Shown in pieces: positions 7,412-32,433 of a stretch of DNA of 64,000 nt (positions are counted from its first letter, which is position 1; every line of letters starts with the position of its first letter). The stretch spans positions 78,678,001-78,742,000 of the forward strand of contig NC_043008.1 of assembly GCF_006345805.1 (NCBI RefSeq), written 5' to 3'. The position numbers and the translations under genes are program-made. The notes beneath the pieces were generated by a model that saw only the letters and a list, made by a program, of their open reading frames with translations, made no database searches and had not been told where the DNA came from. The DNA is from Octopus sinensis (taxonomy: Eukaryota).

Positions 7412-7800
7412 TTATTTCTTTCTTGCCCACAAGGGGTTAAACATAGAGGGGACAAGCAAATCGACCCCAGTGCATAACTGGTTCTTAATTTATCAACCCC
7501 GAAAGGATGAAAGGCAAAGTCGACTTCGGCAGAATTTGAACTCAGAACATAACGGCAGACAAAATACCTATTTCTTTACTACCCACAAGGGGCTAAACAC
7601 AGAAGGGACAAACAAGGAGAGACAAACGGATTAAGTCGACTATATTGACCCCAGTGCATAACTGATACTTATTTAATTGACCCCGAAAGGATGAAAGGCA
7701 AAGTCGATCTCGGCGGAATTTGAACTCAGAACATAGTGGCAGACGAAATACCGCTAAGCATTTTGCCGGTGTGCTAACGTTTCTGCCAGCTCGCCACCTT
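7412..7800 (-). mobile_element. tRNA-derived SINE family 1, head-to-tail dimer with Tx1-type tail
   Basis: Head GGTGGCGAGCTGGCAGAAACGTTAGC, B-box-like GAGTTCAAATTCC, core TTTGCCTTTCATCCTTTCGGGGTC, tail ...AAAGAAATA present twice. Imperfect ~20-bp TSD at 7391-7411 and 7801-7820. Confidence 0.85.
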
Positions 7801-8048
7801 AAAATATTCTGCTCAAATTCATGTGTGTGTATAGGAGTGTGTAAAAAAAAAATTCGAAAAATCTATGGTGGAAAAGACAGATTGAAGGTAACACTTAGAA
7901 GAGTCCTCAAGGTTAAAAGATAGAACAAGGCTATAACTTCTAAAAAGAACATGGCAAGTACTCTTCTGAATGTAAGTTTAATATATATAGTGATAGAACA
8001 CATCAAGTAAAAGTCTGTATGACATAAACTAAGAAAAAGCATTACATT

Positions 8049-8073
8049 GAGAGAGAGAGAGAGAGAGAGAGAG
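8049..8073. repeat. (GA)n tract abutting the 3' end of the Tx1 LINE
   Basis: Directly visible; mirrored by the GA tract at 13431-13537. Confidence 0.95.
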
Positions 8074-8324
8074 TATTTCTTTATTGACCATAAGGTTGAG
8101 AAAAAGAGGGGACAAAACAAACGTTGGGGTCAGGGTATCGAATGAGACGAAACATGAATAAACAAACAATTAAAATATATACAATTAAATGAGAATGAGT
8201 GAATAACAAAAAATGAAGCGGAGGACACGGTTGACCCCACAAACCACATACTCACACTGAAGACTTTGCTTTCTCCTTCTTCACAGTCTTGATTAAACAG
8301 GTTCTTTCACTCACAACATATTTG

Positions 8325-11300
8325 CTATAGACTTTCATCTTTTACGAAACACACTTTGCGCAGGCATTTCTTCTCCAGCCTTATTTTCCGTTTCATGTGG
8401 AAAATGAAAAAGTCGATTAGCTCGAGACTGGAGATAAACATGCCTGTTGCAATTCCTTTTACTCTCGTCTTCCACACTACTTCTTTCGCCATAGCAACTA
8501 CCGAGAGAAAACAGGCTCGCTCCTCCCTATTCAGGGAGGTCAGCGGAACTATCTTCATTACAGATTCACTCGACAGTTGTGCTCTTCTCGAATGCGACAG
8601 CAGGTGTTCGACATAAGCCCAGAGTTCAGTCACCTTGGGGCATTGGACAATCGCGTGCAGGACAGTTTCACTGTCCCTCTCACATCTTGCACAAACCGGC
8701 GAAGGTGCACACCCATGTCTAAAGAGCTTATCTCGAACCGGTAAAGCTCCTCTGTAACATTGCCAGGCCAGGGACTTTTGGTAATTATCCATAGGCCCCG
8801 GACCGAATGTTCTTCGGAACAGGCTGGCCAGTTGATTTTCGTCGAAGCCCAGAGTTTCTCCTAGGACGTCGTCACACTTAAACTCTACTAACCCTCTATA
8901 GAAGAACGAGGTAGCACCCCCGCCACCGGCGTTGCCCGACTGGGAGAGAAGCACGAGTGCCTGATAGCACTCTGCATGCCACATGCCCAACCTCAGTCTA
9001 CACTTGATCCATGGGTTCAGTTCGTTAAACGATGTGAACTGTGGAAATAACAGCTTGACGAACGGAGACCACACCTGCTCACCGTCCAGGTAAATCCAGA
9101 GGTGCCTAAGCCTGAGCGCATGTCTGTGCATTTTTAGCCACGGCATCCCTAACCCACCCTTCAGCGGCTTTTGGCAGCAAATAGAGCACCTTACAAGAGG
9201 TCTGCTGCCCCTCCACAAAAAGCGAAAGAGCATGCGTTCCAGTTTGTTCAGCCACGAATCGGGGCAAGGCACAACGGTCAGGCAGTAAGTGATTACAGAG
9301 GCGATAAACACCTCTGCAACCTCCGCTCAGACCATGTCTGAGTTAGGAGAGCCACCTTTCTCGCCACCTCGCTCCAGTTCTTCTCTATCTGGAGATCTGG
9401 CCCTAACCAGATTCCAAGCATTTTCACCGGTCCTTCCGTCCAACGTCCTACGACGCTGTCAGAAGACATCGACTTGCCCATCCAGGTGCCGAGTTGCAAG
9501 CCGACCGATTTATCCCGGTTGACTTTCGCTCCTGCCACCGCTTCATAGTCCCTTAAGGCCTCACCCACCCACTGTAGGTGCTCGACTCGGGAAACGATGA
9601 TGGTGATGTCGTCCGCATACGCCGAAGCTGACTTTCTGCACCCTAGATCTTGCGGAGTGCCTCTCATAGTTTCCAACCTCCTCAGCAATGGCTCGAGGGC
9701 CAAAACGTAGAGAAGCGTGGAGAGAGGACACCCTTGACGTACCGAACGTTCAATGCTGAACGGCTCCGAAAGGAAACCATTTACCCGAACTACCGATTTG
9801 ATGTTGCTGTATAAAGCGATGATCCATCCGCAGAAGGTCGGGTCGAAGCCAGCTGCCGCGAGGACCACCGCCAGATACTGATGGTCCACCCTATCAAACG
9901 CTTTCGATTGGTCCAAGTGGACCATAGCCCCACCCTTGCCAGGAATCCTATTTACCCTTTCTAAGGCATAGCGTAGAAAGTGGAGATTGTCGTGGATGGT
10001 CCTTCCAGGGATGGCGCAAGTTTGCGCCTCGCCAACAAGTTCACCCACGACCCGCGCCAACCTTTTTGCTAAGACCTTGGCCAAAATCTTCAACTCTGCG
10101 TTAAGCAGAGTGATGGGCCGAAAATTATCAATTAAATCTCCCTTGTTTGGGTCCTTTCTTAACAGCGCTACCACCCCTCGGCTCACAGACTTAGGAATTC
10201 TCCCATTCTGCTGCCAGTTGGTGTACACGCATGCAAGTAGGTGCCCAAACAAGTCTGGCATGCTACTATAGAGTTCGTAAGGCAGACCATCGAGTCCCGG
10301 CAATGTCCCCACCGCAGTCTGCCAACACATCCTCAACTTCTTTGGCTGTGATCGGCACCTCACAAGATTCCGCGTCCGGCTCCGATAGACGCGGCAAACC
10401 AGCTAGGAAGTCTGCAAGCTTCTCCCCGCGCTCCAGCTCGCTGCTCCTCCCGAATAGCTGGGTGAAATGATCATGAAACAACCTTGCACATCTCCTCGGG
10501 TTCATTTACTAATCGACCATTTGGGCCCGTCAAGGATCGAATGGTTGAGTTGTTGCCACGCTGGCCCTCTACCACCCGGGCCCATCCGGCTGCGTTGATC
10601 CCTTCATGTCTCATTGCACGGATCTTAGCCCTGACAATGCACCCTTCATGTTTAGCTTTGAGATGTTGGTCGAGTGCTAACCTCGCCACTAACACTTTCG
10701 ATGCACTGCCTGACCTCATTGTCTTAACTAGTTCCTTTTCTACTTTGTTTCTAGCACTAGCTAGTTCTTTGCTAAACCTAATTGACTCAAATTTGATGGC
10801 TCTTTTCAGGGCGTACCACCATTTGTTGTTGATAATGGATCCAGTTAACGCCCTCATTACTAATTGTTTAATTCGATTCCTGTAGGCTTTACAGTCCAAT
10901 AGTGACTTGTTTAGCTTCCAGTAACCGGTACCTCATCTACACATGCTATCTATGTCGAGCGTACAGGTCACTAATTTGTGATCGCTGTAGCTGACGATAT
11001 GGTGTTGTGGACAGCTAAGTATTTTCTTTATCTTTCCTTCTAGTTATGATTCTATCAATGTAAGACCTGGACAACCCGTCGTTTTTTGCCCAGGTCCATG
11101 CTGGAGTGTCTGGGTGGTCCAGTCTGAATCTATCTGCCAATTCGAAACAACTTAGCATATCGTTGAGGTGAGGTAATCCCCTCCTATTCTTTCTCGAGCC
11201 AACATAATCTACGCTTGCATCGCAAATTATGTTGAAGTCACCTAGCAATACTAATGTGTTCGACGTGCCAAGAAAATTCTCTAGGCTTTTGAAATACTCT

Positions 11301-11670
11301 TTCTGCCCGGCTTTTCCTTCGCAGGGAGCATAGACAGCGACCAGCCTGAACACTTTACCACTGCTGTGCGTCACATCCAAAACGACCAACCTGCCTTCTG
11401 GATCTATAAAGACAGTTCTAATCTCTAAATCCAGGTTTTTCCTGACCAGCACTGCCACTCCTCCGCCCCCTCCAGGTCGACAGGGAGAAACGTATTTCTC
11501 GTAGCCGTTTAGAATGGGCGTAAAAGCCTGTAGCCCACTCAGTCTGGATTTGGTAATTACCACTACATCCAAACGATGCGACCTAAGGTCGTTAAGGAGG
11601 TAGCCTTGCTTCCAATATGACCCCAGGCCACGAATATTTATACAACCGAGTTTAAACGAGAATGTGAAAA
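8325..11670 (-). pseudogene. Tx1 ORF2 (APE endonuclease + reverse transcriptase + C-terminal CCHC), frameshifted
   Basis: EN motifs NIRGLG, LVAVYAP, LGDFN, SYIDRI. RT motifs FRPITLLNAELKILAK, LDQSKAFDRV, VRQGCPLS, YADDI. C-terminal CARCERDSETVLHAIVQC. Split over ORFs 11015-11572, 10471-10899, 10266-10505, 9293-10363 and 8325-9311. Confidence 0.9.
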
Positions 11671-11690
11671 ATTAGTCGAAAGTTTAAAAC

Positions 11691-13268
11691 TTACTGTTTT
11701 AACGGAAGAGAGGGTGTAGTTTCACCCTCCTCTTTTCTGTCTGTGAGTGTTGTGTTTTGCGAGGTCAGTTTTTTTGCGAATTGCCTGTACAGATGGCTTG
11801 AAAAGTTCATCTGTAACGGGCCGACGTCCTCCACAAAAGATTTTTTTATTTCAAAATAATCAGCGTTATCTATTGTATAAAATTTGACATTTTCAGAAAT
11901 AGTACTATTTATATCTGTTACGATATATTTTTTCGCCGATTTCATTAAAATAATTTTTTCTCTTAATGGGTTATTGTTTTTATTTATCGCCGTGAGGGTG
12001 TTTCTTTTCTTTTTGTTAGGCGATTGTGGAGGGGTGTGTGTGTGTGTGTGTTTGTGGGTGTGTGTGTGCTTGTAAAAACATGGGTGTTTGTAGGTCTGTG
12101 TGTGCTTGTGGTAGGTGTGTGTGTGTTTGTGTGTGCTTTTTCCAGTGTGTGTGTTTTTTTGGCTAACTGTGTGTTTGCGACTGTATTTGTGGGTGTGCTT
12201 GTCTGACTCGGAGTTTAGTCCTGTGTATCCAAAGAGGGTGGATTTTTCCGTTTCCGTCTTCTCTTTGAAGGTTCTATGGTGACCCACTCCTGGATGTTGT
12301 TGTTGTTGTTTTCTCCCGTTGTCGGCTGAACTTTGGCAATTGGGGTGCGCGACGTGGCTGCTATTTCTAGCGGTGTAGTTGTTGTTTTCGGCGTCGTGCT
12401 TGCCTCTGCAGTATTTTCTTTGGCTGTCTTCTTGCAGCTCGACCTTAGGTGGCCTTTCTCACCACATTTATAACACCTAGGCTTTCTTCCCTCGACTATT
12501 ACCATCATGCTGGTATTATCTCCAATGGTGAGGGAGCTGGGCAATTTTTCCAAGTCTGAGGGGTTTGCTTGGATCACAAGCTCTAAGTCATGTGGCGATA
12601 TCTCTTAGACTGAAGAATGGCAATTTCTTCCTCTTTGCCTAAGAGAATCGCTGCTATGACAAAGTCCACATCTATTTCGGGAGGAATGTCAGTGACCGTT
12701 ATTCTGGAAGTTCTCATTCCTAAATAAAATGGTAGAACTACATCTTCCGACTTCAACATTCTTGTTGAATGTTCCCTAGCTTTTTCTTCGCTAGGGAAAC
12801 GCACCTCTACCGTGCCGAAGCGACTACCCCTCGTTATATAAGTAGTTTGTTGCCATATCGGCCTCAAACATTTTTCTATGGCTTCTCTCTGCACGAAGTC
12901 AATTTTACTATTTTTCACATTATATGTCTTGTATATGACAGTTTTTCTCTCCGTCGCGTAAATTAATTCACTGGGAGGGAACAACTTCACATTATCACCT
13001 TCTTTTTTTAATAAACTTTGGTACTTCTTTAATTCTTCTTTGTTAATAACGATGTTTTCACAGGGGCGAGTTGCTGCACTCGCAAAATCTATTTTTTACT
13101 TTTCCTGTTGTGTAGTAGCTTCGCTAGACATATTGTCGTCTGCTTTTGTAACAAGCGCGTGAGACGTCTCTTTACTTTTACCTTCCTCCTCCCACATTTT
13201 CGCCTTCATGCCTTCAAACAAATTTTCAATGTTTTCCTCCGACTCGGAGGAGATTGGTGGCAAATTCA
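11691..13268 (-). pseudogene. Tx1 ORF1 (gag-like, zinc knuckle), disrupted
   Basis: RGSRFGTVEVRF...IPPEID segment, CYKCGEKGHLRSSC knuckle, basic KRRRKRK stretch and Thr-rich region. Several frameshifts and a stop. Confidence 0.85.
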
Positions 13269-13430
13269 TGTTTTTCGTCGCTTCCCCCTTGAAACAAGGG
13301 GGAAATAACAGCAGAACTCTGCTGCAACAGCATAAAAGAAGTGGCCTCGACGATCAAATCAGCAAATTTTCAAACTTTTCAGCACAAAAACAATCTTTCA
13401 CTGCGGAGCAAAGAATAACACAACCTATCA

Positions 13431-13540
<110 letters not shown>

Positions 13541-13719
13541 CAACTCAATTTAAGCATAACAGACTTTTTGTATTACACAGTTTTAACACAATGTTTGAAG
13601 TGTCCCAGAAAGATTTACCCATTGATATTTCTTAACTATTCAAAATAAGCTAAAGTTGGGATAATGAAATTTAGCAAAAACATTCTAATGTAAATTGTCA
13701 ATCCATTGCAGTAATTACA

Positions 13720-14620
13720 TTTCAAAATGACCACTTTTTGCCTTGATCATCATAGCCTGTAAACTAATGGTCACCTCTTAATTGTACCACCTCTTAATCC
13801 GATTTGACCCATGAAGACAAAAGGGCTTTTATCAGATCTGGCACATTTGAATAGGGGCAAGCAGAAACATTACTCTTTAAGATGAACCAGATAGCAATAT
13901 CTATGGGATTAGGGTCTGGACTTAATGGAAACCTTATCATCTTGTCTCAAAAACTACTGAAATGTTTTTTGCACCACTGCTGTGCCAAATTAGATATGTA
14001 GGTCAGAGCCCCATCTTGAGTGAAAATGCAATGGTCATAAAAGGTTTCTGTGACCTATGGCAACACTTTCTCATCCAACATTTCCACATAAACTTCACTG
14101 CTGATCTTGATGCCAGTAATGGTGAAGATCAAGAGAGGCCTGGACCCATCAGATGCAACTGCAACTCACACCATGAGTGAAATTGGCTTCTGATGGCATA
14201 AATGACTCCTGCTACCTTTAGAAAAATCTCCAGTATTATGTGCATAAAGCCTGTCATTTTACTTGTTGGTAACTGCCTCCACAGTGAAGATCTTCTCAAT
14301 GGACCAGATCAACACTTTGATAGCAGTGTACTTCATCTCAGCTAACTTAGTTTTACACCTGTCAAGCTGTTTCTTTTTGGAACCTGCTGAAATTAACTAC
14401 CAGGATTGTTTCTTGTATGCAGTTAGCTTTAAATCCTCTTTAATAGTCCTGTGCATTGACGATTTCGAAATATCAAGAACTTTTACAGTTTTTCTTGCAC
14501 TCCTGCAGGGATTTTGGTTCATTCACTTCTTCACAGCCACAAAAGTTTGCTTGGTGTGAATTGATTGTTTCCTAACAGGAATTAGCTTACTAGAGGTAGT
14601 AGAAGACTCTATATATCATT
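13720..14620 (-). pseudogene. Degraded IS630-Tc1-mariner DDD/E transposase (maT/DD37D-like)
   Basis: Manual minus-strand translation across stops and frameshifts gives EKIFTVEAV, QKPISLMV.VAVASDG, GIKISSEVYVEMLDEKVLP, FTQDGA and SPDPNPIDIAIW. Confidence 0.7.
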
Positions 14621-14984
14621 TCCAGGTGTTGAAAACTATTTTATGGCACACATTCAATTATTTTGCTATGCCCTTGTTGCTCATTTCAGCTATTTCCAAA
14701 GTAACAATCTGGTCACATTTTGCTTTTGATGCCTTGTTTGTTTACAAACCTGTTATAGATGAACAAAACAATAGACGCATGAACAAAAGACATATCCAAA
14801 TCATTATATAAAATGTAGATAATATTACCTGAACCAATATTCCTTAGGAAGAGTTTTAAACATGGGTAAATCTTAGACACCCTGTACAATAGAAATATTA
14901 ATTTCAAATTTTAGCACAAGGCCAGTAATTTCAGTAAAAGGGATAAGTCAATTACATCAATGTTCAATTGATTACACCAGTGTT

Positions 14985-15097
14985 AAGCTGGTACTTATTT
15001 TATCAACCCTGGAAGGGTGAAACACTAAATCAACCATGGCAGAATTTGAACTCAGAACGTAAAGACAGATGAAATGTTGCTAAGCATTTAGCCCAGT
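14985..15097 (-). mobile_element. Diverged partial SINE family 1 copy
   Basis: Plus-strand GGCAGAATTTGAACTCAGAACG and GCTAAGCATTT match the head/core of the 7412-7800 copy. Confidence 0.6.
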
Positions 15098-17250: not shown

Positions 17251-17254
17251 CATT

Positions 17255-18950: not shown

Positions 18951-19781
18951 AAAGTTAGATATGACTTGACGACTAACCTTTTTAACCGGTGATTGGTCAT
19001 TGCTACACCAACTTTACTTTTCAACTGCTTTTCAATGACTTGGGAGTCTTATGCAAAATTTTTTCTACTGTTGCTGCTTCATGTAGAAATCTAGGCAAGT
19101 GGGGTCACAATCACCACCGCGATAACAAAGACAAACATTGGTTTTCATTTTTTGGAGCCATTTATTTTCTTCTCGTACATAACATCATGCAGGTGTACTG
19201 CGTGTATATACAAATGTATCGCAAGTGTATGGTAGACTACAAAATAAGAAAACTACAAAATAAGACAAACTAAGATAAAAATTATTTGAACAGGGTTTTA
19301 CTGATATTTGACTTCCTGATATACAGCTTTCTTGTGACAAAGTTTGATTGCAAAATACATTTAACATGTTTATTATAACTGATACACACGTGGGTGAAAA
19401 GAACCGAGTGAGGAAAAAATGATACATACACTGAAACACTTTCACCTATGGATATACAATTATCTATGCCTCATTATATGTCTCAGGTTAATGTAAGGAA
19501 AACAACTAGATATATTTAAATTATCTTACAAAAACTTTGTCAGTTCATCATTCTGGAAGCAGCAATGGTACAAAACCATGTTCGCAGTAACATGAAATAA
19601 CCAGAGAAGAACATTCAGCGATGACAGTGGGTTTTCTGAGATATAGATGGACACAAAAAGGGACCTCACCCCTTTTTCTGGAAACAAAACAACCTCGATG
19701 CCAGATGCAAACCGGAAGTGGCTCACTTCCGACAAATAGTAATATAGTAGACTTATCGTTGGAGATAACAGTTACTTCATA

Positions 19782-20479: not shown

Positions 20480-22925
20480 TTATTTAGGAAGAGAGTTAGT
20501 GTTGATGAGATGCAGTCCAGATTTGTAGTGGGTAGGAGCACAATTGATGCTATATGCCTGGTTAGGCAACTGCAGGAGAAGTAATTAGCCTGTAGCGGAT
20601 TCTCTCTCTCTGTTATGTATACATGAATACGGACGTAGTAGATAACAGCTAGCCTTCGGCCACTCCTTTGAACCCTGTTGTGTCCACTACTCTGATTGGT
20701 TGGTATTGGTGCAATCTATTATGCACCAATGTGCTACCCAACCAATCACAGCCTTCTGACAAGACAGTCTCTTCCAAACAATCTGGTGAACCAATAGCGT
20801 GGTATAAAATGCTAGTTTCAACACCATATTTCGTCTTTCGGTTCTAGACCTTCTAAGGTCTAACCACTGACCACAGCCAGTTCCAGTGACAACACCAGCA
20901 GCCACATTGGAGACTCAACATTCGTCCAACAGCATACAGCAATCTCCATCTCCGTCACCTTCATCTTAACGTCATCAACAATATCTCTCTACATACACAG
21001 TGACCAGCAACATTTGCTCAGGTTCATTTCAACACTTCATGAATCACTTCACCATGGTTAACAGCAAATACAACCTGTGAGAACTTCCTGTATCAAGTGA
21101 CCAGCTGCAGCATAGTAACCACAGCTTCCTGCACGACATGTGCCTCAACCGGCTCTGCTTCTTTGCCATAAGTTCTTGTTACAGCAATTCAGCTATTGTG
21201 TACCTTTGCTACGAACTGGTATTTATCATCCTTGTGTCTGAACATTCTTCTAGCGTCCTATTATAGACTCTTTCAATACTCTGTATTTAATGTACACACA
21301 TACACATTATGTATACATGACGACATGTCTATTATTGTTATTATTATGCATATATGACACACACACACAGACACACATATTAACCTATCAATAAAATCTT
21401 CTCTTAACATTCTACCGGTTGTGTCTCTCTTTTCCTTCTGGCACTTGGACTCATTTATCACTTTTCGTATTTTATTGTAAACGATCGTGCGGTGTACTAA
21501 AGGAGCCATTCACGTCACCTATCCTTTGCACAGTCGTTCTACAAGCCAAAAATAAACTTCTGTACTTAGCTGTTGTTGACATGGAGAAAGCCTTTGACAG
21601 GGTTCAATGCTCCCTTATCTGGTGGTCAATGCAGAAGTTAGGGATAGATAAATGGTTAGTGAGAGCAGTACATGGATGCTGCCAGTAAGGTGAATGTTGG
21701 CAATGAGTATAGCAATGAATATAGCAAAAGAATATACAGGTAGGAGTGTAACAATGAAATCAGTGTACAATGTACAAGGCTCAGTTCTCAGTCCTCTCAT
21801 GTTTATCTTAGCCCTCCGAGCCTTAACAGAGGAATTCAAGACCAACTGTCCCTGAGAGCTCCTCTACATTGATGACCAGTTTCTTATAGCTGAATCACTA
21901 CCTGACCTAGAAAAGAAATTTCAGATGTGGAAACAAGACCAAAATCCTAGTAAGGAGGAGAGCAGACAAACCACAAGTCCCTTCTGGGAGATATAAGACG
22001 GTGTTGGTAGAAGCTCCATATGTTGTACCCAGTGCAAGATTTGAACATATAAGCGATGTAGAGGTATCACAAGAAGGTTGATGAAGAATATAGTCTTTGT
22101 GTGTGGTAAATGTGCATTAAAAATGTGCAGACAATAGGCTCCCTCACATGCTTGGGGGGATCATAAGAAGTAGTAGATAGCTTCTGTTACCTAGGAGACT
22201 AAGTTAGGTGGAAGAAGTTCTGAAAGTGTGGTTGCTAGGATAAGAACAGGCTGGGCAAAGTTCAGAGAGCTTCTACATTTGCTGGTAACTCCCTCAGAGT
22301 ACATGCAACAATATTACATGACAGTGAAACATAGGCTTTGACTACAGTGGGCTTGCAAAAGCTTGAAAGAAATAAAGCTAGCATGTTCCACTGGATAGAT
22401 AATGTCAGTGTGCATATATAAATGACAGAGTATAAATGATTTGAGAGGAAAACTGGGTATAAGAGGCAGCAGACGTTGTATGCAAGAAAGTAGGCTGTGC
22501 TGGTTTGGTCATGTGATGCATATGGGTGAGGACAGCTGCGTAAAGAAGTGCCATGCTCTAATTGTGGAGGGTACTAATAGAAGGGGTAGACCAAGGAAGA
22601 TGTGGAACTAAGTGGTAAGAAAGGATCTTTGGATACTGGGCCTCACTGAGGAAAAGATAAGGGATCAGGAATTGTGGTGATTTACTGTACTTGATAAGAT
22701 GCATCAAGCTAAGTAAAATTCTGTCGGGTACCAGTGCCACTTAAATAGCACTTGTGCTGGTGCTGCATAAACGCACCCATGCCAGTGGCATGTAAAAAGC
22801 ATTTAGCACTCTCTGTTAAATGGCTGGCATTAGGAAGGGCATCCAGCTGTAGGAACCATGCCACAACAGACAGTTGAAGTCTTGACAACTCCCTGCTAAC
22901 CAGCTCCATGATGATGACAATGATG
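20480..22925 (+). mobile_element. Degraded RTE-clade LINE (RT to 3' end) split by a solo LTR
   Basis: RQLQEK*LA is followed after the LTR by (A)KNKLLYLAVVDMEKAFDRV...LIWWSMQKLGIDKWLVRAV. The 3'UTR has GGCATTAGGAAGGGCATCCAGC and a (GAT)n-like tail. Confidence 0.8.
20591..21543 (+). mobile_element. Solo LTR (953 bp) with 4-bp TSD
   Basis: TGTAG...CTACA termini; AGCC duplicated at 20587-20590 and 21544-21547. CCAAT at 20726, 20742 and 20791, TATAAAA at 20803, AATAAA at 21390. Removing it restores the RTE reading frame context. Confidence 0.9.
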
Positions 22926-22964
22926 AATCTGACTGGTCAATCTAAGCAGGAAATCGCATTATTT

Positions 22965-23420
22965 CTTTTTCTTCATCATCATCAATCATTCGATGTCCGT
23001 AGTTCCATGTTAGCAAGCTGGGGAGTTGCACCAGACTCCAGTCTGATTTGGCAGGGCTTCTATGGCTCCAGTCTGATTTGGAGTGGTTTCTATGGCTGGA
23101 TGCCCTTCCAAATGCCATCCACTTTACAGAGTGTGCTGGGTGCTATTATGTGGCATCACACAGGTGGTTTTGTATGGTGCTGCACAGGTGCTTTAACGTG
23201 ACACTGCCATGAGTGATTTTCACTACCAAAGGAACTGGTCTTCATACTGCTGCTGTAGAATACGGGTCTTCTTGAGTACAGCAAGGCTCCAGGCATTTCA
23301 GTCCTTTGTTATCTCACCTGAAAGGTTCAGCATCCTGAGGTCATTCTTCAGGTACTTCATTTCATGTCTTCCTGGGTCTCCCACTTTCATGTTTCATCTA
23401 CTTTGAGAAATCGCTACTTC
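22965..23420 (-). mobile_element. RTE LINE 3' terminal fragment
   Basis: (TCA)n tail, GGATGCCCTTCC motif and a 31-bp internal tandem duplication CTCCAGTCTGATTTGG. Confidence 0.7.
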
Positions 23421-23454: not shown

Positions 23455-23828
23455 CCAACCACATGGTTCCGGGTTCAGTCCCACTGCGTGGCATCTTGGG
23501 CAAGTGTCTTCTGCTATAGCCCCGGGCCGACCAATGCCTTGTGAGTGGATTTGGTAGACGGAAACTGAAAGAAGCCTGTCATATATATGTATATATATAT
23601 GTGTGTATGTGTGTGTGTTTGTGTGTCTGTGTTTGTCCCCCTAGCATTGCTTGACAACCGATGCTGGTGTGTTTACGTCCCTGTCACTTAGCGGTTCGGC
23701 AAAAAAGACCGATAGAATAAGTACTGGGCTTACAAACAATAAGTCCCGGGGTCGATTTGCTCGACTAAAGGCGGTGCTCCAGCATGGCCGCAGTCAAATG
23801 ACTGAAACAAGTAAAAGAGTAAAAGAGA
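23455..23828 (+). mobile_element. SINE family 2, near full length
   Basis: tRNA-like B box GGGTTCAGTCCC, internal TA/TG microsatellite and tail GACTGAAACAAGTAAAAGAGTAAAAGAG. Near-identical to 4536-4821. Confidence 0.85.
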
Positions 23829-23845
23829 TATGTGTGTGTGTGTAT

Positions 23846-23946
23846 TGTTATATAGCACGTTCAAAAGGCGTACCTTTGTCAATGATGTACCTCTACTCAA
23901 CTACTGAACTCAGATTTCCAATGACTCAACTCAACAGAACTGAACA
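23846..23946 (-). mobile_element. Gypsy LTR remnant homologous to 31347-31445
   Basis: By hand alignment 82 of 100 positions match the 5' LTR at 31347; many differences look like CpG decay. It lacks ~60 bp present in the other copy. Confidence 0.8.
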
Positions 23947-25500
23947 TAGAGGGGGACAAACAAGGACAGACAGGACACCACAGAAGGGTCAATACATAGA
24001 ACGCATATGAATGAAATGATTATATAATAATGAAATTATGAATGGTTGCATATGCCCCTCATCACATACAGTACCATTAATCTTGTTTACAATCAATTAT
24101 TATCGGATATTTAAATAACAATTAACTAACATGTAACATACCATTGCAAGTCACCAATCCATGTATTATCCCGCGGTCCACATCGGATTCCTGATGCATT
24201 GTCTTTCCAATAAAAACAGTCTTATTACTCGCTATCCATTGACAGAGGGCTATCACATCACTCCGGTCGATTACTGGTTCCACCTTTTCAAACTCAACTT
24301 CAAACTGTACCGTTCCCATGTCGTACCTGTTTTTCAACTCTTCATAGCAATTCAGTTCTATTATTATTGCTTTAGTACCATCCTTAGGTAATTTAACCCA
24401 TATTACTGACTTCATTTTCAGGATCTCTGTTTCCGTATGTATATTCTTATGGTACTCTACATAATACCATCTCTTCTTCATCTGATTTTCACCTCCTCTT
24501 TCATTCCTTTTTACTTCACCTCTCTTCAATCTCACCTCCGGAGGAGAAATTTTCAAACTTTCCTCTTCTGTTTTTCTTGTCACCATTTTTTCTCCGTTAC
24601 TTCCCATCGCCTCTTTTTTCTTTTTGAGCTTCTCTGGTGGAGAACCCCTTCTACATTTTCTTTTCCGTGGTTTCACCTCCACTAATTCCTCTTTTGTATC
24701 CACTGTTTCAGTTCCTTCTACACATTCCACCACGTTTGCCTCTCTCTGCGTCGAACTCTCCTCCCTCTCTTTTTCCTTGTTTTGAGGGCAGTCCGCTTTT
24801 TTTGTGTCCTCTTTTGCTACACAAAACACATTACAAAGGCCTGCCCTCTACCACCACATTCAGCTTGTTTCCTTCGGGCAGTACTATTTCTTCAATTATG
24901 GAATTCAGGTCTTCCAGGGTGGCTTGAATTTTCATTTCTAGCCCATAAATTCAACTTTGGAGTTCTTGTTGCCTTTAATATTTTCAGACTCTGTTTCACA
25001 TGGAACAAGACTGCCGCCATAATCCACGTCTCGTCATATTCAGGTGAGATTTTACCCACCTTTACTCTCGCCATTCTTTTCCCACAGTAACTCGGTAGGA
25101 AAGCCCACTCGTCATTCCTAATCGCGTCTACTGCACGCTCTGCTGCTACTTCCTCAGATGCGAACAGGACTTCTACCACTCCGAGCTTCTGACTTCTTGT
25201 TACAAAAGTCGTCAGGTATTTAATATCTTTGAGTGCCTTTTCTACTCTCAGTCGTTGTGGTTTCAATTTTTCTTGTGGATAATCTTAAAGTCTTATACAG
25301 GACCGTTCTTTTTTGTAAACTTTACAAAAATTCCTTTGGCAGTACCAGAGAGAGTGCTGTTCCTTGATTCGTTGACAATTTTCCACTTTCTTTAATTCTG
25401 TCTGTTTCTACCTTTACGTCCATCACTGTTAACGAGGGCCACCGCTGCATAGCTCTGGCTCAAGGTATTCAAGTTCTCCATTATACAATTGAATTGCTCT
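23947..25500 (-). mobile_element. ORF1-only Tx1-derived element a (HAL1-like)
   Basis: ATG at 25481 (MENLNTLSQSYAAV), LGVVEVLFASEE...FLPSYCGKR, and a degenerate knuckle C..C.KRGHKKADC. The stop at 24122 is followed by a ~180-bp UTR and the TGTCTGTCCTTGTTTGTCCCCCTCTA tail; no EN or RT. Confidence 0.75.
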
Positions 25501-25504
25501 ATGC

Positions 25505-27165
25505 TTTCTCTTTATTATAGGCATATAGCCTTTTTTATAGAATGGACATTACAAAGACAAATGTAGAGTACATAAAATGATTAACAAATGAATTATGAAG
25601 GGTGAAATTATAATAATGAAATGACTTTCTACCCCACAAAGTAGAAAATCCCATTTTACTGTTTTTATAATCAATGATTTTGTCCAGTATGCATCATGTT
25701 TATATTGCATAAGGTATTAAGTCTGTATACATTACCACTGTGGCAATTCATCATATTGAAACCGCTTTCTTGTAATTTCCGCTCTACTTCCAAATGTCTC
25801 TTTTAGTCTTGCCGCTCTTTCGTTCTCAAGTAGCACTACTTTCATAATATGGTTCTCTTCATTATCTACTAATTTCACTCTTATTATATCTTTCATTTTT
25901 GCTATACGCTTTTCCATTTCCACACTTTTCTCATACACTGCTGATAATCGTTCATGTTTTTCTTTGTGTGGCTTTCTCGGCTGTATTTCTTCACTCTCTA
26001 CACCAGTAACTGGTGTCTCCATTTCTGTTTGTTGTTCGTTTTCTTGTCTCTTCTGTCCTTCCTCCCCTCCACTCATTGAAGGTTCCGGCTCTTGAGTTCA
26101 ATCCTCCATTGCTTCTTCATTTCTTCTTTTTTTTCTTTTTTCCTTTCCTCCACCTTCCTTTTCTTTTTCGGTGGAGATTCACTATTTCCTTCCTTCTGCA
26201 CCACTGTAAACTTTATTTCCCTCTCCGATATTACATTCACTTCCATTTGATGCCCCTCCTCCACCGTTCATGTTTCTGGGGACACTTTGCCTTCATGTGC
26301 CCCCTTACTCCACATTGGAAGCAAAATGGTGGGCTACCCTCCACTATGACTCTCAGCCTGGTCTCATCGGGTAGCACTATCTCATCTATCATTTTGTGGA
26401 GGTCAGGCAGGCTGATAAGTACCATCACTTCTAGGCCATACCCCCACCAGTTGACCTCCACTGTCTTGAATATTTTCAGTATCTCTACTTTCTCCTCTGT
26501 ATTGTAGAGGATGGCTGTCACAAGCCAGTCTCCGTTAATTTCGGGTAACACTCTCCCTATCCTCACTCTGGCTGCGTGTCTGCCACAGTAAGTAGGCAAG
26601 AGTGTCCACTGTACTGATTTTAAAGCTACGGTGGAGTACTTCTTTGCTTTGTTCTCATTAACGAAGCATACCTCCACCGTGCCAAATTTTCATCTTCTGT
26701 TAAAGAAAGTCGTCACTTCCTTAACTTCTTTCAAACACTCCTCTATTTCTTCAACACCTGCTATTTCTACTTTTCTTGTATTTATGTTCAGCATTCAGTT
26801 AGTGATTATTTTCCTTTCCGACTTCTCTGTTATTTCTTTGTGGGGTGTCAGTCTCAAACATTCTCCTTCCTTCTTCAACAGGTTATCAAACCTTTTGTAA
26901 TCAATATCTTTCACTTCCAGTTCCCGTATTTGCAGTAGCTTCGCGGTCAGGCTTTTGCGTGTCACCGCAGCATAACTGCCTGTCTGGGTCTGCGTGTTCA
27001 TAGTTTCATTATTTACTGCTTCCCCCATAAATGGGGAAGCCAAATAAAATCTTCAACGAATTCAAAAAATTACAAATTCAACAATCACAATTTGAACAAT
27101 TCAACAATTCCACAATTCAAATTAACAAAGCAACAACTCACATGTGAGCGAAATCAAGATACAAC
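25505..27165 (-). mobile_element. ORF1-only Tx1-derived element b (HAL1-like)
   Basis: GSYAAVTRK, LLPTYCGRHAARVRIG and CFQCGVRGHMKAKC. The stop at 25732 is followed by a UTR ending AATAAAGAGAAA (25505-25516); no EN or RT. Confidence 0.75.
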
Positions 27166-30100
27166 AAAAGGTGGTTCTATGCTACGCCTGTCTAGCTATC
27201 ACATCCACTATATATATGTATTGGACTAGCCTACTTATCGTCTGGGGGTATCCACACAACACTTCCCCCTTTTGAGAGTTTTTTTTTTTTCTAAACCCAA
27301 ATTTATTTCCTTGGTGAGAAACTGGGGCATATCTTTTTCTCTTAGTGTTAATTTCCATCATTTTTGTAGGTTGGACCTACGTGTCAGTTCTGCTTCTGCT
27401 TGTGGTTTTGGGACCTCGAACAAATCATACCATATATCCATTGGTTCCTCTCGCCTCTCTTGAGTTTTGGTATATCTGCTTTTTAATTGGTTTATATGCC
27501 TTCTGGGTTCATATTTTGATCCTTTTACTATGTACATCACGTTACCCAGACGTACAGTTACAGTCCCTTGTTCCCAGTCCTGTTTTCCGTTTCTATATAT
27601 TTCAAAATACACTTCATCGTCCGTGTTAAAAGATTTCGTTTTTCTTCCCGAATTTTCTATTTTCTGTTTCCTACTCGGCAACAATTTATCAAAAGTAGAA
27701 CGAATTTTTCTAGAAAACATCAAATCTGCAGGTGACCTACTCTATTCTGCATTTGGATTCAGTGTTATTCTATACACCTGCAAAAACTTCGTCATTTTTG
27801 TATCTTCAAGTGTTTCCCATCTGGTCTTTCTTAAATCTCTCTTGAATGTGTCGACGAATCTTTCCGCTAACGCATTTGACCTTGGATGGGATGACAGAGT
27901 TAATACATGGTTCATTTGAACCGACTTACAGAATCTTTCGAACACCTTCTCCATGAATTGTGTACCATTATCTGACAATCGTATCTGGCACCCCATAACG
28001 AGTGAATAATTCTTCCAAGAAGTCAATTGTGGTTGGCCATTTGGAATAGCTATCCACCACAATGATATAATGAGAGTCATTTATTGGTCCTGCGAAATCC
28101 ACATGCAGTCTAGACCATGCCGAATCCATTTTTGGCCACGGATAAATCTGCACGGGGGTGGGGGGTGGCTTTGCTGCCATAGCGCATCCCCTACACTGTT
28201 TTACCAGTCTCTCAATTTGCTTGTCCATATTCGGCCAATAAATGTAACTCTTCATGAGGCTCTTCATCCGGACAATCCCTGGATGCCCTACTTTTAATAC
28301 TCTGTATTGCAGCACTTCAGGTATTACCACTCATTGTGCATATAATAATACCTCATCACATACTGAGTAGTGCTTTGAACCTGCGTCCCGCTCATTTATA
28401 TTTTTCGTGTTACTCAACATTTTTTAAATCTTGTTTATGAACCTATCTTTTCCTGATTCCAATTTAATTAGTTCCAGCGTTACCGGCAAATCATGTACTA
28501 CATTGCACAAAATGTTCTTCAGTTCCATTTCAAGTTTTAACGATGCAATCATCATGTGTTCAAAAAGTTCCTCATATTTTGGAATTAGCCTCGACAACCC
28601 GTCTGCGTGTCCCATTTTTAATGATGGCAAAAACTCCATCTGAAAATCGAAGTTCAACAGGGTAGTCCACCAGCACTGTAAGCAGTTTGCTGAGCATGTG
28701 GGATACCCTTTTTCAAACTGAAAATAGACAGTAATGGTCGGTGATCCGTTTGCAGTGTAAACTTCCTCCCATGTAAGAATTTATGGAATTTTTTACTGCG
28801 AAGATTAATGATAACGCCTCTTTTTCAATCTGGCTGTAGTTTCTTTCCGCTGGTAATAGAACTCTTTTATTTCCTTGGTGAGAAACTGGGGCATATCTTT
28901 TTCTCTTAGCATTAATTTCCGTCATTTCTGTAGGTTTTCTCTTCCTGTTTGACCTACATGTCGGTTCTGATTCTGCTTTTGGTTCTGGGACCTTGAACAA
29001 ATCATACCATATATGCATGTGCAATAGCTTTGATTTTACCATCATTAAATGTATGCGATATCATAGCTCCTATACCATATTCACTGGCATCCAATGCCAC
29101 AATTATTTTCAGGTTTGGGTCGAAATGAGTTTATGATAACTGATGTTAACCGCTTTTTTAATTCCTCGAATGCTTTCTGACATTCGTTTGTCCAGTCCCA
29201 TTTCGAGTCCTTCTTTAACAACTTGTTCAACGGAGCTCTTAGCTCATACATTTTAGGTAATAAGTGGTAATAATTTATCAGACCTAAAAATGCTTGTAAT
29301 GTTGTTTTGTTAGTGGGAGGAGGCATTTCTTTTATCGTGTGAACCCTAGAAGGGTGCGGTTTTCAACCGTTTTCATCGATAAACTGTCCTAAGTACTTTA
29401 TTTTTGTCAAGAAAAATTCACATTTATCCTCACTTACTTTAAACCCGTAATCGTTTATCTGTTTGAAAACCTCTTCTATATGTTCAATATTTTGTTCCCT
29501 TGATTCCCTTTTGATCAATATGTCATCCAAGTATGGGACCGCAAACTCACAATCTGCTAGCATTGTATCCATCACTTGCTGAAATATTGCTAGTGCAACC
29601 TTAACCCCAAATGGCAGTCTTTTGAAATGGTAGAGACCTTTATGAGTATTGATTGTTAATACTTTAGCACATTCTTCATCTACCAGTAATTGGAGGTGGG
29701 CCTCTGACAAATCCAGCTTGGAAGAAATTTTCCCACCATTACACTTAGCAAATATTTCTTCTGGGTTTGGAAGCGGATAATTGTAATTTTTTAAACAATC
29801 ATTAAGACCAGTTGAGAAGTCCGCACATATTCTTATTTCGTTGTTCTTCTTTTTTATAATTACAGTAGGAGCCGTCCACTCAAAGTAATCTACTTTTTCA
29901 ATTACCTCTATGTCTTCCAGTCTTTGTAATTCCTTCTCAACTTGATTTAATGCCACAAAAGGTACATCCCTTTTCAGTTTGAACACCGGCACTGCATTTT
30001 CTTTCAACTCAAACTTTACTTTGATTTTTTTACACATACCGAGTTCTTTCGAAAACATAGGGTACATCTTTTTCAATTTTAATTTCAATTTTTTCGATGC

Positions 30101-31334
30101 TTTCTCTGACACAGACTGTGACACATTCACCTTATTGCATAGTGTATTCAGTGGTAAATCCCACAGGTCGAATTCTTCCATCAAATCTGTCCCAAACAGA
30201 TTCATTGTAGTCATAGATACCGTTAGTTTACTTTTCCGCGTCATGTTTTTAAGTTTTATTTCTGGTGAAATTTTGCCCAAGAATTGAACCTGTTCCCCTG
30301 ACACACCGTGAGTTATCCTAGTAGTTTTTTTATACACCGGCCTGCCTATCTTATTCCATGTTGCTGTATTTATTATCGATACGTCTGAGCCGGTATCTAA
30401 TTTCATTTTGGTCTGAAAATCATTTATTTCTACCAACACAAATTTTCGATTTTGTATGGTATAATTTATTTTTGTTGAGCAGAATTTCTTTGGTTTTACA
30501 ACTTTCTTCGACCGGCATTTCATCTGTATATGCCCAATTTTACCACACTTAAAACAGGTTTTATCTTTAAAGGGGCAATCTTTCCTCAAATGTCGGTCCC
30601 CGCAACCATACCACCATTTTGAATTGATATGTTTTCTTCTATCTATACTTTCTTTACACATTCGTACATTCTTATTATTGTCTTCTATTTTTCTTGTATC
30701 ATCTCAAAGGTTTATTATTTGTCAGCATTCCTCAGCCACTTTCTGCAAGGTTAATATTTTTTTTCTAATTTCCACATCTTCCATTGCCACCAGCCCTTTA
30801 ATGAATATTAGGCACTTGAACATATCTGGCATTAATTCTTCCAGCTTAAATCTTTCGCAAGCCTACCGGCATATGTTACAAAATTGTCGGACTCGTTTTT
30901 CTTTAAATTTAAACATCCCCACCAAATGTTAAACTGTGAACTTTTCTCGCTAAAAATATTAGTCAAAATAGTTATTGTTTCATCAAAACATAATTCCGTG
31001 GGTTTTCTCGGCAAAATAAAGTTACAAAAACTTTCATGTTCTGGAGAGGCAAGCTTTCGCAAAAGAAGTTTTACCTTCCTTTCACTAGACCATCCCTTGC
31101 ATTTCTCTCAGAATAAATGTTCTTATCGTCTGTAATATGCAGTACAGATAGTTCCTTCATTCAGTTTGTAGTGAAATTCTTTGATGGAATTTGCAACACT
31201 GTCTGCTGAAAATGATTCGGTCGTATTTCTCAACTGCAGTAACAATTCTATTAACTTCTGTAGTTGTTGCTGTTGCTGCTCTTGTTGTTTGACAACTACT
31301 TTCAGTAACTCTTCCATTTCAGTACTATTCGAAA

Positions 31335-31345
31335 CCTCGTCGCCA
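31335..31345 (-). promoter_or_regulatory. Primer binding site TGGCGACGAGG (complementary to the 3' end of tRNA-Ser(GCU) as recalled)
   Basis: Lies 1 nt after the LTR end ...ATATAACA and just upstream of gag. Confidence 0.8.
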
Positions 31346-31346
31346 C

Positions 31347-31505
31347 TGTTATATTGCATGTTCAGATGGCGTACCTTCGCCAATAACATACCTCTACTCA
31401 ACTACCAAACTCTCACATCCGACGACTCAACTCAACAGAACTCAACGTCTAGTCTACCGATAATTTCAGCTCGCTCTACGTGACACTCTTTCTACGGCCA
31501 TAACA
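31347..31505 (-). repeat. Gypsy 5' LTR or its 3' portion (159 bp, TGTTAT...ATAACA)
   Basis: Precedes the PBS, has inverted 6-bp ends and is homologous to 23846-23946. Confidence 0.75.
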
Positions 31506-32433
31506 TAGAGGGGACACCACAAGGACAGACAACACAAAAGGTGGGGTACATACAAACATATAATGAAGGAATTATGAATTATGAGAATAATGAAAATGAA
31601 ATGGCTTTTCTACCCCCCAAAGTAGGAAGTTGCATTTTAATGTTATTCAAAATCAGTAATTATTTTCCAGTTTGTATCGTGTTCACACCAAAAAATCTAT
31701 TAACTCCTCAAATTCTATCACTGATGGCATTTCGTCATATCTAAATCAGAATGCTGTTATTTGTATCATGTCTCCAAATATTTCTCTCAATCTTCCTGCT
31801 CTCTCATCTTCAACACAGCTTTCATATTCAGGTTCTCCACCTTGTTGGCCAGCTTAATCCTTATTACGCCTTTCATCTTGGAAATTCTTTTCTCTATTTC
31901 CACGCTCTTTCCGTACTGCACCATCACTCTTTCGTATTTCCCCTTCGGTGGCTTTCTCAGCTCTATCACTTCGCACTCTGCCCATGTTGCTAGTGTTTCC
32001 ATCTCTATTTGTTGCTCCTTCTCACTTTCTAGTCTTTTCTGTTTTGCCTCCTCCATGCTTGTTGAAGGCTCTAGTCTTTGTGTTCGTTTTCCTGTTGATA
32101 CCTTATTTTTTCCTTTTTCATACTTATTTTTCCCCGCTTTTCTTTTCTTTTTAGGTGGATATTCAATGTTTTTTCTCTTCCTTTCTACCACTGTAAACTC
32201 CTTTTCCTCCTCTGCCGTTACAATCTCTTCTTCCCGACTCTCTTTCTCTGCCTCCTCCTGTTCGTGTTTCTGGGGACACTTGGCTTTCATGTGACCCCTT
32301 ACTCCACATGCAAAACATAGTGGAGGTCTACCTTCCACAATAATTCTAAGTCTGGTTTCGTCTGGTAAAATGAGCTCTTCAACAATCTTATGGAGGTCTG
32401 GTAAGCTGATATGGACCATTACCTCTAGCCATA
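31506..32433 (-). mobile_element. ORF1-only Tx1-derived element c (5'-truncated, HAL1-like)
   Basis: ORF 31787-32419 with CFACGVRGHMKAKC is similar to element b with many synonymous changes. It has the same UTR layout and the GTCTGTCCTTGTGGTGTCCCCTCTA tail. Confidence 0.75.

Follow-up and report, generated by a model that had tools for sequence, protein, structure and literature searches.

A common 3´-terminal tail on an L1-superfamily LINE, ORF1-only elements and a SINE in a 64-kb stretch of the Octopus sinensis genome

We analysed 64,000 nucleotides of Octopus sinensis DNA (NCBI RefSeq assembly GCF_006345805.1, contig NC_043008.1, forward-strand positions 78,678,001 to 78,742,000), hereafter the window, which is AT-rich, repeat-dense eukaryotic DNA. 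A 432-amino-acid ORF of the window (29363-30661) has an identical product on O. sinensis chromosome record CM016870.1 (assembly GCA_006345805.1), where the window lies around 78.7 Mb. Three kinds of retroelement without long terminal repeats (LTRs) carry a common 3´ tail of about 45 nt in it, a small predicted hairpin followed by AAAGAAAT: a long interspersed nuclear element (LINE), elements that possess only the first open reading frame (ORF1) of such a LINE, and a short interspersed nuclear element (SINE). We consider it probable that an octopod lineage of L1-superfamily LINEs bearing this 3´ module copies not only itself but also, in trans, two sorts of parasites, the SINE and the ORF1-only half-LINEs. 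This LINE lineage is likely the engine copying a SINE type that is abundant in octopod genomes. Our O. sinensis sample comprises one LINE copy, three copies of the SINE (type 1) and three ORF1-only copies (a, b and c), all from the window. Coordinates of the tails of the LINE, the SINE dimer and elements a, b and c refer to the minus strand, which is the element strand, and those of the SINE at 19783-20015 to the plus strand. Features are collected in Table 1.

The LINE ends at 8074 with TTGTCCCCTCT-N11-TTATGGTCAATAAAGAAATA and the 5´-truncated SINE at 7413 with TTGTCCCCTCT-N12-TTGTGGGCAAGAAAGAAATA. The three SINE termini read ...TTGTCCCCTCTATGTTTAACCCCTTGTGGGCAAGAAAGAAATA (7413), ...TTGTCCCTTCTGTGTTTAGCCCCTTGTGGGTAGTAAAGAAATA (7569) and ...TTGTCCCCTCTATGTTTAGCTCCCTGTGGGTAATAAAGAAACA (20015, plus strand). 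LINE and SINE tails agree in 33-34 of 42-43 nt, SINE tails among each other in 37 of 43. Searched in the window with at most one mismatch, TTGTCCCCTCT was matched seven times (0.88 expected). The terminal 17-mer TGGNYARKAAAGAAAYA, with the pattern TGG..A..AAAGAAA(T/C)A, was matched four times against 0.07 expected, at the LINE end and the three SINE ends and nowhere else in the 64 kb. A tail core of 29-30 nt, TGTCTGTCCTTGT(T)TGTCCCCTCTATGTT, is present exactly in the SINE at 19960-19988, where its 29 nt read TGTCTGTCCTTGTTTGTCCCCTCTATGTT, and recurs with at most three mismatches or one indel in a (23943-23972), in c (31502-31531) and in the SINE at 7596-7624; 0.00 such matches were expected. 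A profile hidden Markov model of the tail, run over the whole window, retrieved only the LINE, SINE, a and c instances plus element b. When 10-13 tails of the LINE, SINE and ORF1-only classes are aligned, mean column identity reaches 71% over 43 nt, as opposed to 37% for whole 3´ untranslated regions (UTRs). Metagenome contigs scanned for the tail pattern yielded eight matches, all of them unrelated and at chance level.

These results bear on an initial annotation made from the sequence of the window, which had proposed that three classes of non-LTR retroelement share one recognition tail. The sharing is indeed far above chance, and comparison with other species strengthens it. The end sequences that the annotation quoted for the LINE, the SINE and a, b and c were all recovered in place on the element strand, and its statement that LINE and SINE end in a common tail is borne out by the 33-34 identical nucleotides and by the 17-mer. 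It had further ascribed to a and c a motif nearly identical to that of the SINE: both do contain the core, but in a the motif is not the 3´ terminus. The looser tail reported for b is full-length (AGGCTATATGCCTATAATAAAGAGAAAGC). Target-site duplications (TSDs) of the SINEs, given as 19-21 bp, measure 19 bp (perfect) and 21-22 bp (imperfect).

Judged by the relatives of the LINE, the tail belongs to the LINE family itself. A near-intact LINE of Argonauta hians (locus L002, 6886-12290), with an ORF1 of 482 amino acids and an ORF2 of 1200 amino acids with one in-frame stop, ends ...TTCTGTGTCAGCCAGGTGGCTAAGAAAGAAAT, and a second LINE 3´UTR unit, 130 bp downstream in the same locus, ends ...TTCTGTGTCGGCCCTTGTGGCTAATAAAGAAATC. 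The LINE of a JGI metagenome contig (L003), which evidently holds cephalopod DNA, ends ...GGGCCCTTGTGGCCAATAAAAGAAATC and is followed by (ATT)n. Both LINEs show 57-65% amino-acid identity to the window LINE. Because these homologous LINEs end in the common tail, the tail of the window copy is its own and no fused SINE fragment. The 3´UTRs are 251 nt (window), 273 nt (L003) and 277 nt (Argonauta) long, those of the window and L003 are similar also outside the tail (z 4.9), and no SINE CORE or body sequence was found upstream of the window LINE tail. The possibility, raised in the initial annotation, that the LINE end is a SINE fragment is thus rejected. More distant LINEs, with about 50% identity in the reverse transcriptase (RT) (L004, L013, L014), lack the tail, which therefore marks one octopod lineage.

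Of the nine tails present in the 22-kb Argonauta locus, two are found at LINE 3´ ends and seven at SINE-like units, which share the CORE-like body of the Octopus SINE but differ from it in their tRNA-like head (B box GTGTTCGAATCCC). The tails of the Argonauta LINE and of all seven SINE-like units read GGCC.TTGTGGCTAA.AGAGAAATCTAT, that is GGCC.TTGTGGCTAA.A(G/A)AGAAATCTAT, whereas in O. sinensis LINE and SINE tails both finish GAAA(T/C)A. On this comparison, LINE and SINE tails have changed together between Octopus and Argonauta, terminal bases included, and SINE heads have been exchanged, body and tail being retained. Joint change of the tails together with exchange of the heads is what a functional partnership predicts. 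Argonauta TSDs measure 13, 15 and 17 bp; overall the TSDs span 13-22 bp and are L1-like.

Two further features of the Argonauta locus deserve mention. CTAT comes after each of the nine tails, and (C)TAT(T) opens the three TSDs that can be read, so that either the element ends ...GAAATCTAT or its endonuclease and priming favour TAT targets by microhomology with the RNA end. Additional short tail-bearing units, starting ..CCCTAATTTAA(A/G)T.GG, lie at 12291-12651 and 13885-14015 (minus strand); in one of them a head of 130 nt, containing a B-box-like GGTTCAATC, precedes a whole LINE 3´UTR. They may represent additional non-autonomous families on the common tail.

In the octopod LINE lineage the module is about 45-60 nt long and made up of three parts: a pyrimidine block TTGTCC(C/T)CTCT, a GC hairpin of 3-4 bp with a CTTGT-type loop, and A(A/G)TAAAGAAAT with one to four lineage-specific terminal bases. 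RNAalifold, applied to 10 and to 13 tails, places a hairpin of 4 bp some 13 nt before the tail end, in the forms CCC-CTTGT-GGG, ACC-TTAT-GGT, GGCC-CTTGT-GGCC, AGCC-AGGT-GGCT and AGGC-TATAT-GCCT. Pairing is preserved in 92% of cells, versus 67-78% in shuffled alignments (0/500) and 14-64% when the partners are slid. Covariation of the 4-bp helix amounts to 0.50-0.65, versus 0.22-0.23 in shuffles (0/500), and in two to three of the four pairs both sides have changed in a compensatory manner. In several folds the pyrimidine block (TTCT/CTCT) additionally pairs with AGAA of the terminal AAAGAAA; this outer stem is invariant.

What the module may do is suggested by analogy with LINEs of the stringent type, such as those of the eel and zebrafish L2 (PMC4176376, PMC3472496). 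The ORF2 protein (ORF2p, endonuclease and RT) of active members of the LINE lineage would pick its own RNA through the hairpin-plus-AAAGAAAT module, and target-primed reverse transcription (TPRT) would start at the end of this module. Through the same module it would also act in trans on the SINE, an element of about 230 nt in which a Pol III-type head and a CORE-like body precede the tail. The ORF1-only half-LINEs (about 1.6 kb; 5´UTR, ORF1, 3´UTR and tail) would make ORF1 protein of their own and need ORF2p from a full LINE. Both the recognition of the tail by ORF2p and the mobilisation in trans are what we infer from this analogy and from the anatomy of the elements.

Elements a, b and c encode homologues of the LINE ORF1. 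In tblastn searches the N-terminal domain of the LINE ORF1 matched a at 4e-19 and b at 2e-25, and its CCHC part matched the elements at 3e-6 to 7e-13, the latter value belonging to c; b matched the ORF1 of the Argonauta LINE at 2e-20. The three ORF1s are about 37% identical to that of the window LINE, and their C-terminal part beyond the CCHC knuckle showed no significant similarity to the LINE's. In each element a UTR of 175-220 nt separates the ORF1 stop from the tail, and the scanned ORFs contain no Pfam endonuclease or RT domain. Their description in the initial annotation as ORF1-only elements, or half-LINEs, agrees with the presence of LINE-family ORF1 homologues and the absence of ORF2. 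Since a, b and c share this ORF2-less architecture at only 58-68% mutual identity, the ORF2-less form is probably older than their divergence. Elements a and c agree at about 90% in the tail core, 70% in the 3´UTR and 58% in ORF1; the excess of the core over the 3´UTR argues for constraint on the tail. A protein search with the ORF1-only protein found a single relative, an annotated c-type protein fragment of O. bimaculoides with a near-identical N-terminal half, which is 74% identical to the b query over the aligned part.

The LINE itself matches Pfam domains Exo_endo_phos (2e-12), RVT_1 (5e-30), zf-RVT (8e-9) and zf-CCHC (3e-5). Its best match among solved structures is human L1 ORF2p (6e-38), R2 proteins following at about 1e-20. 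On the grounds of its APE, RT and zf-RVT domains and of human L1 ORF2p as closest solved relative, we assign it to the L1 superfamily. Membership in the Tx1 clade, to which the initial annotation had referred the LINE, is suggested indirectly by the literature on mollusc LINE clades and by the (TC)n flanks: Tx1, and not L1, figures among the clades named in tree-based surveys of mollusc LINEs (PMC10294476), and for O. vulgaris no L1-type group other than L1-Tx1 is listed among the recently active ones (PMC13282606). The closest database relatives of the LINE, with 57-66% protein identity, come from Argonauta hians, another NCBI assembly and the JGI metagenome contig. The initial annotation had spoken of an autonomous Tx1 lineage; the window copy, however, is not autonomous: mapped against the Argonauta and P0001 homologues, it has at least five frameshifts (one in ORF1, at least four in ORF2) and is dead. 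CA-rich simple repeats have expanded within its ORF1. An AlphaFold model of the ORF1 N-terminal domain reached a pLDDT of 45, too low for judging an RRM fold; the CCHC knuckle is present according to Pfam.

The LINE sits within a (TC)n microsatellite, in element orientation, as (TC)n occurs on both of its flanks (Table 1). Outside these flanks, (TC)n tracts make up about 0.4% of the window. The same microsatellite is the target of Kibi elements of the Tx1 clade (PMC4494074). Targeting of (TC)n rests on one case here, and the full-length Argonauta copy has an ordinary 17-bp TSD, SINE TSDs likewise being non-microsatellite. As a separate observation, a hairpin motif (T)TCCCC..loop..GGGGGAAG(C) is found about 80-100 nt 5´ of ORF1 both in the LINE (13220-13180, minus strand) and in b (27045-27015, minus strand), with a counterpart CCCTC..GAGGGGAAGG in the Argonauta LINE (L002 7005-7030).

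The full-length type-1 SINE has about 230 nt, and the type-1 copies are 86-92% identical to each other. The window contains six dispersed SINE copies or fragments; those with measured TSDs have 19 and 21-22 bp, the latter value belonging to the imperfect TSD around the dimer at 7413-7799. The initial annotation had called the element a tRNA-SINE; ARAGORN found no tRNA in the heads, Rfam gave no tRNA match at E<=1, and only by eye can a B-box-like GAGTTCAAATTCC and a D-arm-like GCTGGCAGAA..TAGCAC be discerned. The body appears to resemble the MIR CORE (..TTTC.TC....GGGG.T.ATAA.T.AGTACC). In 1994, Ohshima and Okada reportedly described the octopus tRNA-derived SINEs OR1, OR2 and OK. Probably the type-1 SINE is of OR1/OR2 type or a close relative of it. 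Cephalopod repeat surveys class the main octopus SINEs as tRNA-Core (PMC8967140, PMC4758252, PMC4824008).

A second type of SINE has the head and body of type 1 and a tail that retains a GGC/GCC hairpin and an A-rich end. Its copies lie in or adjoin (ATT)n or (ATC)n. The type-2 tail resembles that of the L003 LINE, which is likewise followed by (ATT)n. This suggests a second pair of LINE sublineage and SINE with a microsatellite-type end.

Several observations weigh against a three-tier system driven by the tail. The tail of a ends after the core ...CTCTATGTTCA, lacking the hairpin and the AAAGAAATA part, and the distal half of the tail of c is degenerate (ATGGCCGTAGAAAGAG). TSDs of a, b and c were sought and none was found. 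A homology between the 5´UTRs of b and the LINE, convincing by eye, was dropped since it is not significant (z -0.09 versus shuffles), and the similarity of ORF1-only 3´UTRs to that of the LINE outside the tail is marginal (z 1.9-2.3). The ORF1-only copies number three, all at one locus. The window LINE and SINE tails are about 78% identical and their hairpins differ (ACC/GGT in the LINE, CCC/GGG in the SINE), so that the dead LINE copy of the window is not itself the driver. The LINE lies in (TC)n and the SINEs have ordinary TSDs, hence their choice of target differs. Finally, the helix has just 4 bp, its register is ambiguous in the window LINE, and folding energies of single tails are no better than those of shuffles (minimum free energy z +0.7 to -2.4); for these reasons a conserved tail hairpin with compensatory changes is rated as suggestive only.

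Could a different engine explain the SINE? Among the recently active LINEs of O. vulgaris, RTE, CR1 and Dong-R4 rank highest in abundance (PMC13282606), and one such more abundant clade (RTE-BovB, CR1 or Dong-R4) might drive it, the likeness of the tails being a recombination relic or a shared A-rich end with a poly(A) signal, devoid of function. That the tail contains the generic signal AATAAA, and that the window LINE and SINE tails match at just 78% or so, would agree with this. However, the similarity covers 43-60 nt, including the hairpin and a block that is not A-rich, and the motif occurs at no other place in the 64 kb. Terminal bases of LINE and SINE co-vary between Octopus and Argonauta, TSDs of 13-22 bp suit L1-type TPRT, and in the loci examined the tail is on no other LINE clade, the roughly 50%-identical LINEs of L013 and L014 being without it. 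We regard a driver from another clade as quite unlikely. Recognition might instead be relaxed as in mammalian L1, where a short A-rich end (AAAGAAAT) or a terminal microsatellite annealing to the nicked target would suffice and the upstream 35 nt would be kept by mere descent. Compensatory substitutions in the hairpin stem speak against it, as does a tail core far better kept than the adjoining UTR among long-diverged elements, and we give this reading very little credence, even if target sites do start with bases able to pair with the RNA end: (C)TAT in the Argonauta TSDs after GAAATC, (CT)13 after the LINE in (TC)n, (ATT)n after the L003 LINE and the type-2 SINEs.

The two remaining alternatives concern the nature of the individual elements. 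With SINEs in great abundance and frequent nested insertions in the window, the LINE end might be a SINE fragment fused to, or inserted at, a 3´-truncated LINE of a family with no tail of its own. This is extremely improbable and largely refuted, given that the LINE's 3´UTR falls in the length class of the L003 and Argonauta LINEs and aligns with the former outside the tail, that no SINE body precedes the tail, and that three independent LINE copies elsewhere share it. As for the ORF1-only units, the same architecture of ORF1 stop, UTR of about 200 nt and tail at 58-68% identity, the c-type fragment in O. bimaculoides and the mere 37% or so identity of their ORF1s to that of the window LINE make it unlikely that they are dead-on-arrival products of single LINE insertions, arisen by internal deletion or template switching, with no propagating tier behind them. 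Such an origin would fit their confinement to one 9-kb region and to the LTRs of one Gypsy copy, the lack of TSDs, the single relative found in the database search, and reading frames broken except for stretches of 210-235 amino acids.

The copying of SINE and half-LINEs in trans by a tail-bearing octopod LINE lineage thus remains the explanation we favour. A bolder version of it may be put forward tentatively, and we hold it for doubtful as a whole: an octopod LINE lineage of the L1/Tx1 group would have retained, or evolved anew, the stringent recognition of a 3´ stem-loop, would drive the expansion of CORE-type SINEs in place of the more abundant RTE, CR1 or R4, and would support the half-LINE tier. 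The end bases of the tail or the microsatellite added to it, annealing to the nicked target, would guide integration and give rise to sublineages that home to (TC)n, (ATT)n or certain transposon LTRs.

Shared-tail partnerships and ORF1-only derivatives of LINEs are well known; what is unusual about the octopus case is that the LINE is an animal member of the L1/Tx1 group. The octopus elements resemble eel UnaSINE1/UnaL2, zebrafish ZfL2 (Kajikawa and Okada 2002; PMC4176376) and the bivalve HCD-SINE/LINE pairs (PMC11481361) in having a LINE-derived tail of about 40-60 nt, a short hairpin near its end, predicted in the octopus case, and a defined terminus rather than a long poly(A). In bivalves, partnership has been accepted for common tails of 35-61 bp with 72-95% identity (PMC11481361), and the octopus tail lies within this range in both span and identity. 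The LINEs of those pairs, however, belong to L2, CR1-Zenon, Nimb, RTE and similar clades, whereas the octopus LINE belongs to the L1 superfamily. Four clades provide the partners of bivalve SINEs, Tx1 not being among them (PMC11481361).

Partnerships within the L1 clade are rare. Examples are maize ZmSINE2 and ZmSINE3 with LINE1-1_ZM and Chlamydomonas SINEX-3_CR with L1-1_CR (Ohshima 2012, PMC3472496), in which an L1-clade 3´ end of about 45-50 nt with a compensatory hairpin is shared by SINEs. The three SINEs with L1 tails listed there are all from a plant or an alga (PMC3472496), and some have poly(A) ends; the octopus set, in contrast, comes from a mollusc and includes an ORF1-only tier. 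This tier parallels HAL1 (derived from L1), HeT-A (Jockey) and Ag-Sponge (CR1), which kept 5´UTR, ORF1 and 3´UTR, lost ORF2, need ORF2p of the parent and form several diverged lineages (PMC5786205). HAL1 relies on poly(A), whereas the octopus ORF1-only elements have a specific tail, and likeness of their 5´UTR to that of the LINE is not demonstrable.

Among Tx1 elements and their partners, Tx1L in Tx1D, Keno, Kibi (in (TC)n), Koshi (in (TTC)n) and crocodilian Tx1-Mar with SINEU have been described (Kojima 2015, PMC4494074). The window LINE resembles Kibi in lying inside (TC)n in the Kibi orientation, and the ORF1-only elements in LTRs recall Tx1-type targeting of repeats. Unlike in Tx1 insertion into microsatellites, type-1 SINEs and the Argonauta LINE have ordinary, non-microsatellite TSDs. 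SINEU, the one Tx1-SINE link reported, demonstrates that Tx1 elements can mobilise SINEs; it shares with Tx1-Mar a target preference and poly(A), not a specific tail (PMC4494074).

Octopus SINEs have been linked to brain-expressed transcripts. They rank among the largest classes of repeats in Octopus, making up about a tenth of its genomes; values given are about 11.6% for O. vulgaris (PMC13282606) and, as a share of annotated repeats, about 40% (PMC8967140). The octopus repeat papers that we searched name no partner LINE for them, and no published description of the pairing was found, Repbase and Dfam entries, which may hold one, lying outside this search. The co-evolving shared tail points to one specific L1/Tx1-type lineage as the copier of these SINEs. 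If this is true, the very few L1-clade LINEs on record with stringent recognition of their 3´ ends gain an animal example, and the case bears on whether the relaxed poly(A) recognition of mammalian L1 is derived. The ORF1-only tier would moreover offer a natural system for studying the contribution of ORF1p in trans.

Elements a, b and c are embedded in the LTRs of a Ty3/Gypsy copy. A sister Gypsy copy elsewhere in O. sinensis (L015, 9199-13003) has intact, uninterrupted LTRs of 140-155 bp, TGTTGTGTGG...CAACATAACA; since these LTRs do not contain a, b or c, the idea that the three elements are LTR parts was rejected. In the window copy, the LTR sequence is broken at 27181/27180, 23941/23940 and 31484/31483. 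The insertion site of c lies some 45 nt into the 5´ LTR. That of b+a, joined head to tail, lies some 80 nt into the 3´ LTR, about 35 nt deeper. The 100 bp following a and c are 82% identical to each other, and in c the primer-binding site comes next. At this one locus there are thus two or three independent insertions in about 300 bp of LTR and none in the 4-kb Gypsy interior. Chance is an unlikely explanation, and the arrangement, at a single locus, hints at a target preference of ORF1-only insertions for the Gypsy LTR.

Composites without spacer or with a single TSD were encountered three times: the SINE dimer (7413-7799), b+a (23941-27180) and, in L002, 6886-12651, where the full LINE and a 360-bp tail-ending unit lie together within the 17-bp TSD TATTTTTAAAATTTGTA. 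Such structures would fit template switching, in which the RT passes from one RNA's 5´ end onto the tail of a second RNA. Within the Gypsy copy itself, a piece of about 150 bp from the 3´ part of pol (integrase C-terminal part, 27302-27441) is duplicated with 84% identity at 28866-29018, between RT and RNase H. In L015 this segment is present once only, at the 3´ end of pol, which indicates an internal rearrangement in the window copy.

Table 1. Positions of the retroelements and associated features in the window.
Feature	Position	Strand	Description
LINE, full-length, dead, L1/Tx1 superfamily	8074-13428	minus	5.36 kb; 5´UTR, ORF1, ORF2 (APE, RT, zf-RVT), 3´UTR
LINE ORF1	11691-12990	minus	N-terminal domain 12583-12990; CCHC knuckle 12215-12577; C-terminal part broken by CA-rich simple repeats
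LINE 3´ tail	8074-8115	minus	TTGTCCCCTCTTTTTCTCAACCTTATGGTCAATAAAGAAATA; hairpin ACC-TTAT-GGT, then AATAAAGAAATA
(CT)13	8049-8073	minus	directly after LINE 3´ end
(TC)n	13429-13537	minus	about 108 bp; directly before LINE 5´ end
Type-1 SINE, full-length	7569-7799	minus	tRNA-like head, CORE-like body, LINE-type tail
SINE, 5´-truncated, internally deleted	7413-7568	minus	head-to-tail with copy 7569-7799; one TSD (7800-7820, 7390-7411) around the pair
Type-1 SINE, full-length	19783-20015	plus	perfect 19-bp TSD AGATAACAGTTACTTCATA (19763-19781, 20015-20033)
Type-2 SINE	46484-46705	plus	tail ...CAGGCCTTTTGCCAACAACAGAAAGGATTATTAT; head and body as in type 1
Type-2 SINE	41103-41312	plus	as above
Type-2 SINE	~14890-15093	minus	as above
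ORF1-only element b	25503-27180	minus	about 1.68 kb; 5´UTR with short tandem repeats, ORF1 homologue, 3´UTR of about 220 nt, looser full tail ending AATAAAGAGAAAGC
ORF1-only element a	23941-25502	minus	about 1.56 kb; abuts end of b; tail stops after TGTCTGTCCTTGTTTGTCCCCCTCTATGTTCA, LTR sequence next
ORF1-only element c, 5´-truncated	31484-32433	minus	starts in ORF1 just upstream of CCHC knuckle; tail TGTCTGTCCTTGTGGTGTCCCCTCTATGTT, then degenerate ATGGCCGTAGAAAGAGTG
Ty3/Gypsy copy	27181-31483	minus	gag-PR-RT-RNaseH-IN
Gypsy 5´ LTR remnant	31347-31483	minus	
Gypsy primer-binding site	31335-31345	minus	TGGCGACGAGG
Gypsy polypurine tract	27262-27273	minus	
Gypsy 3´ LTR, first 81 nt	27181-27261	minus	
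Gypsy 3´ LTR, remainder	23846-23940	minus	

Other repeats were noted in the window. A short interspersed repeat at 4538-4821 (plus strand) and 23501-23827 (minus strand), the two copies being 84% identical, reads ...TCTTTTACTTGTTTCAGTCATTTGACTGCGGCCATGCTGGAGCACCGCC... on its own strand and has CA-rich repeats before or after it; the second copy lies directly at the terminus of the Gypsy 3´ LTR. Probably this repeat is another abundant SINE of the octopus. An ORF of 104 amino acids at 17784-18098 (minus strand) is integrase-core-like (..YSDNGTNFVG..) and represents a fragment of another LTR or retrovirus-like element, unrelated to the tail. Sequences of about 830 bp at 1157-1990 and 62434-63249 form an inverted pair with 71% identity, and a family of repeats of about 200-300 bp is present in at least five copies, its coordinates including 47206-47491, 55233-55523, 63055-63252 and 22773-23166.

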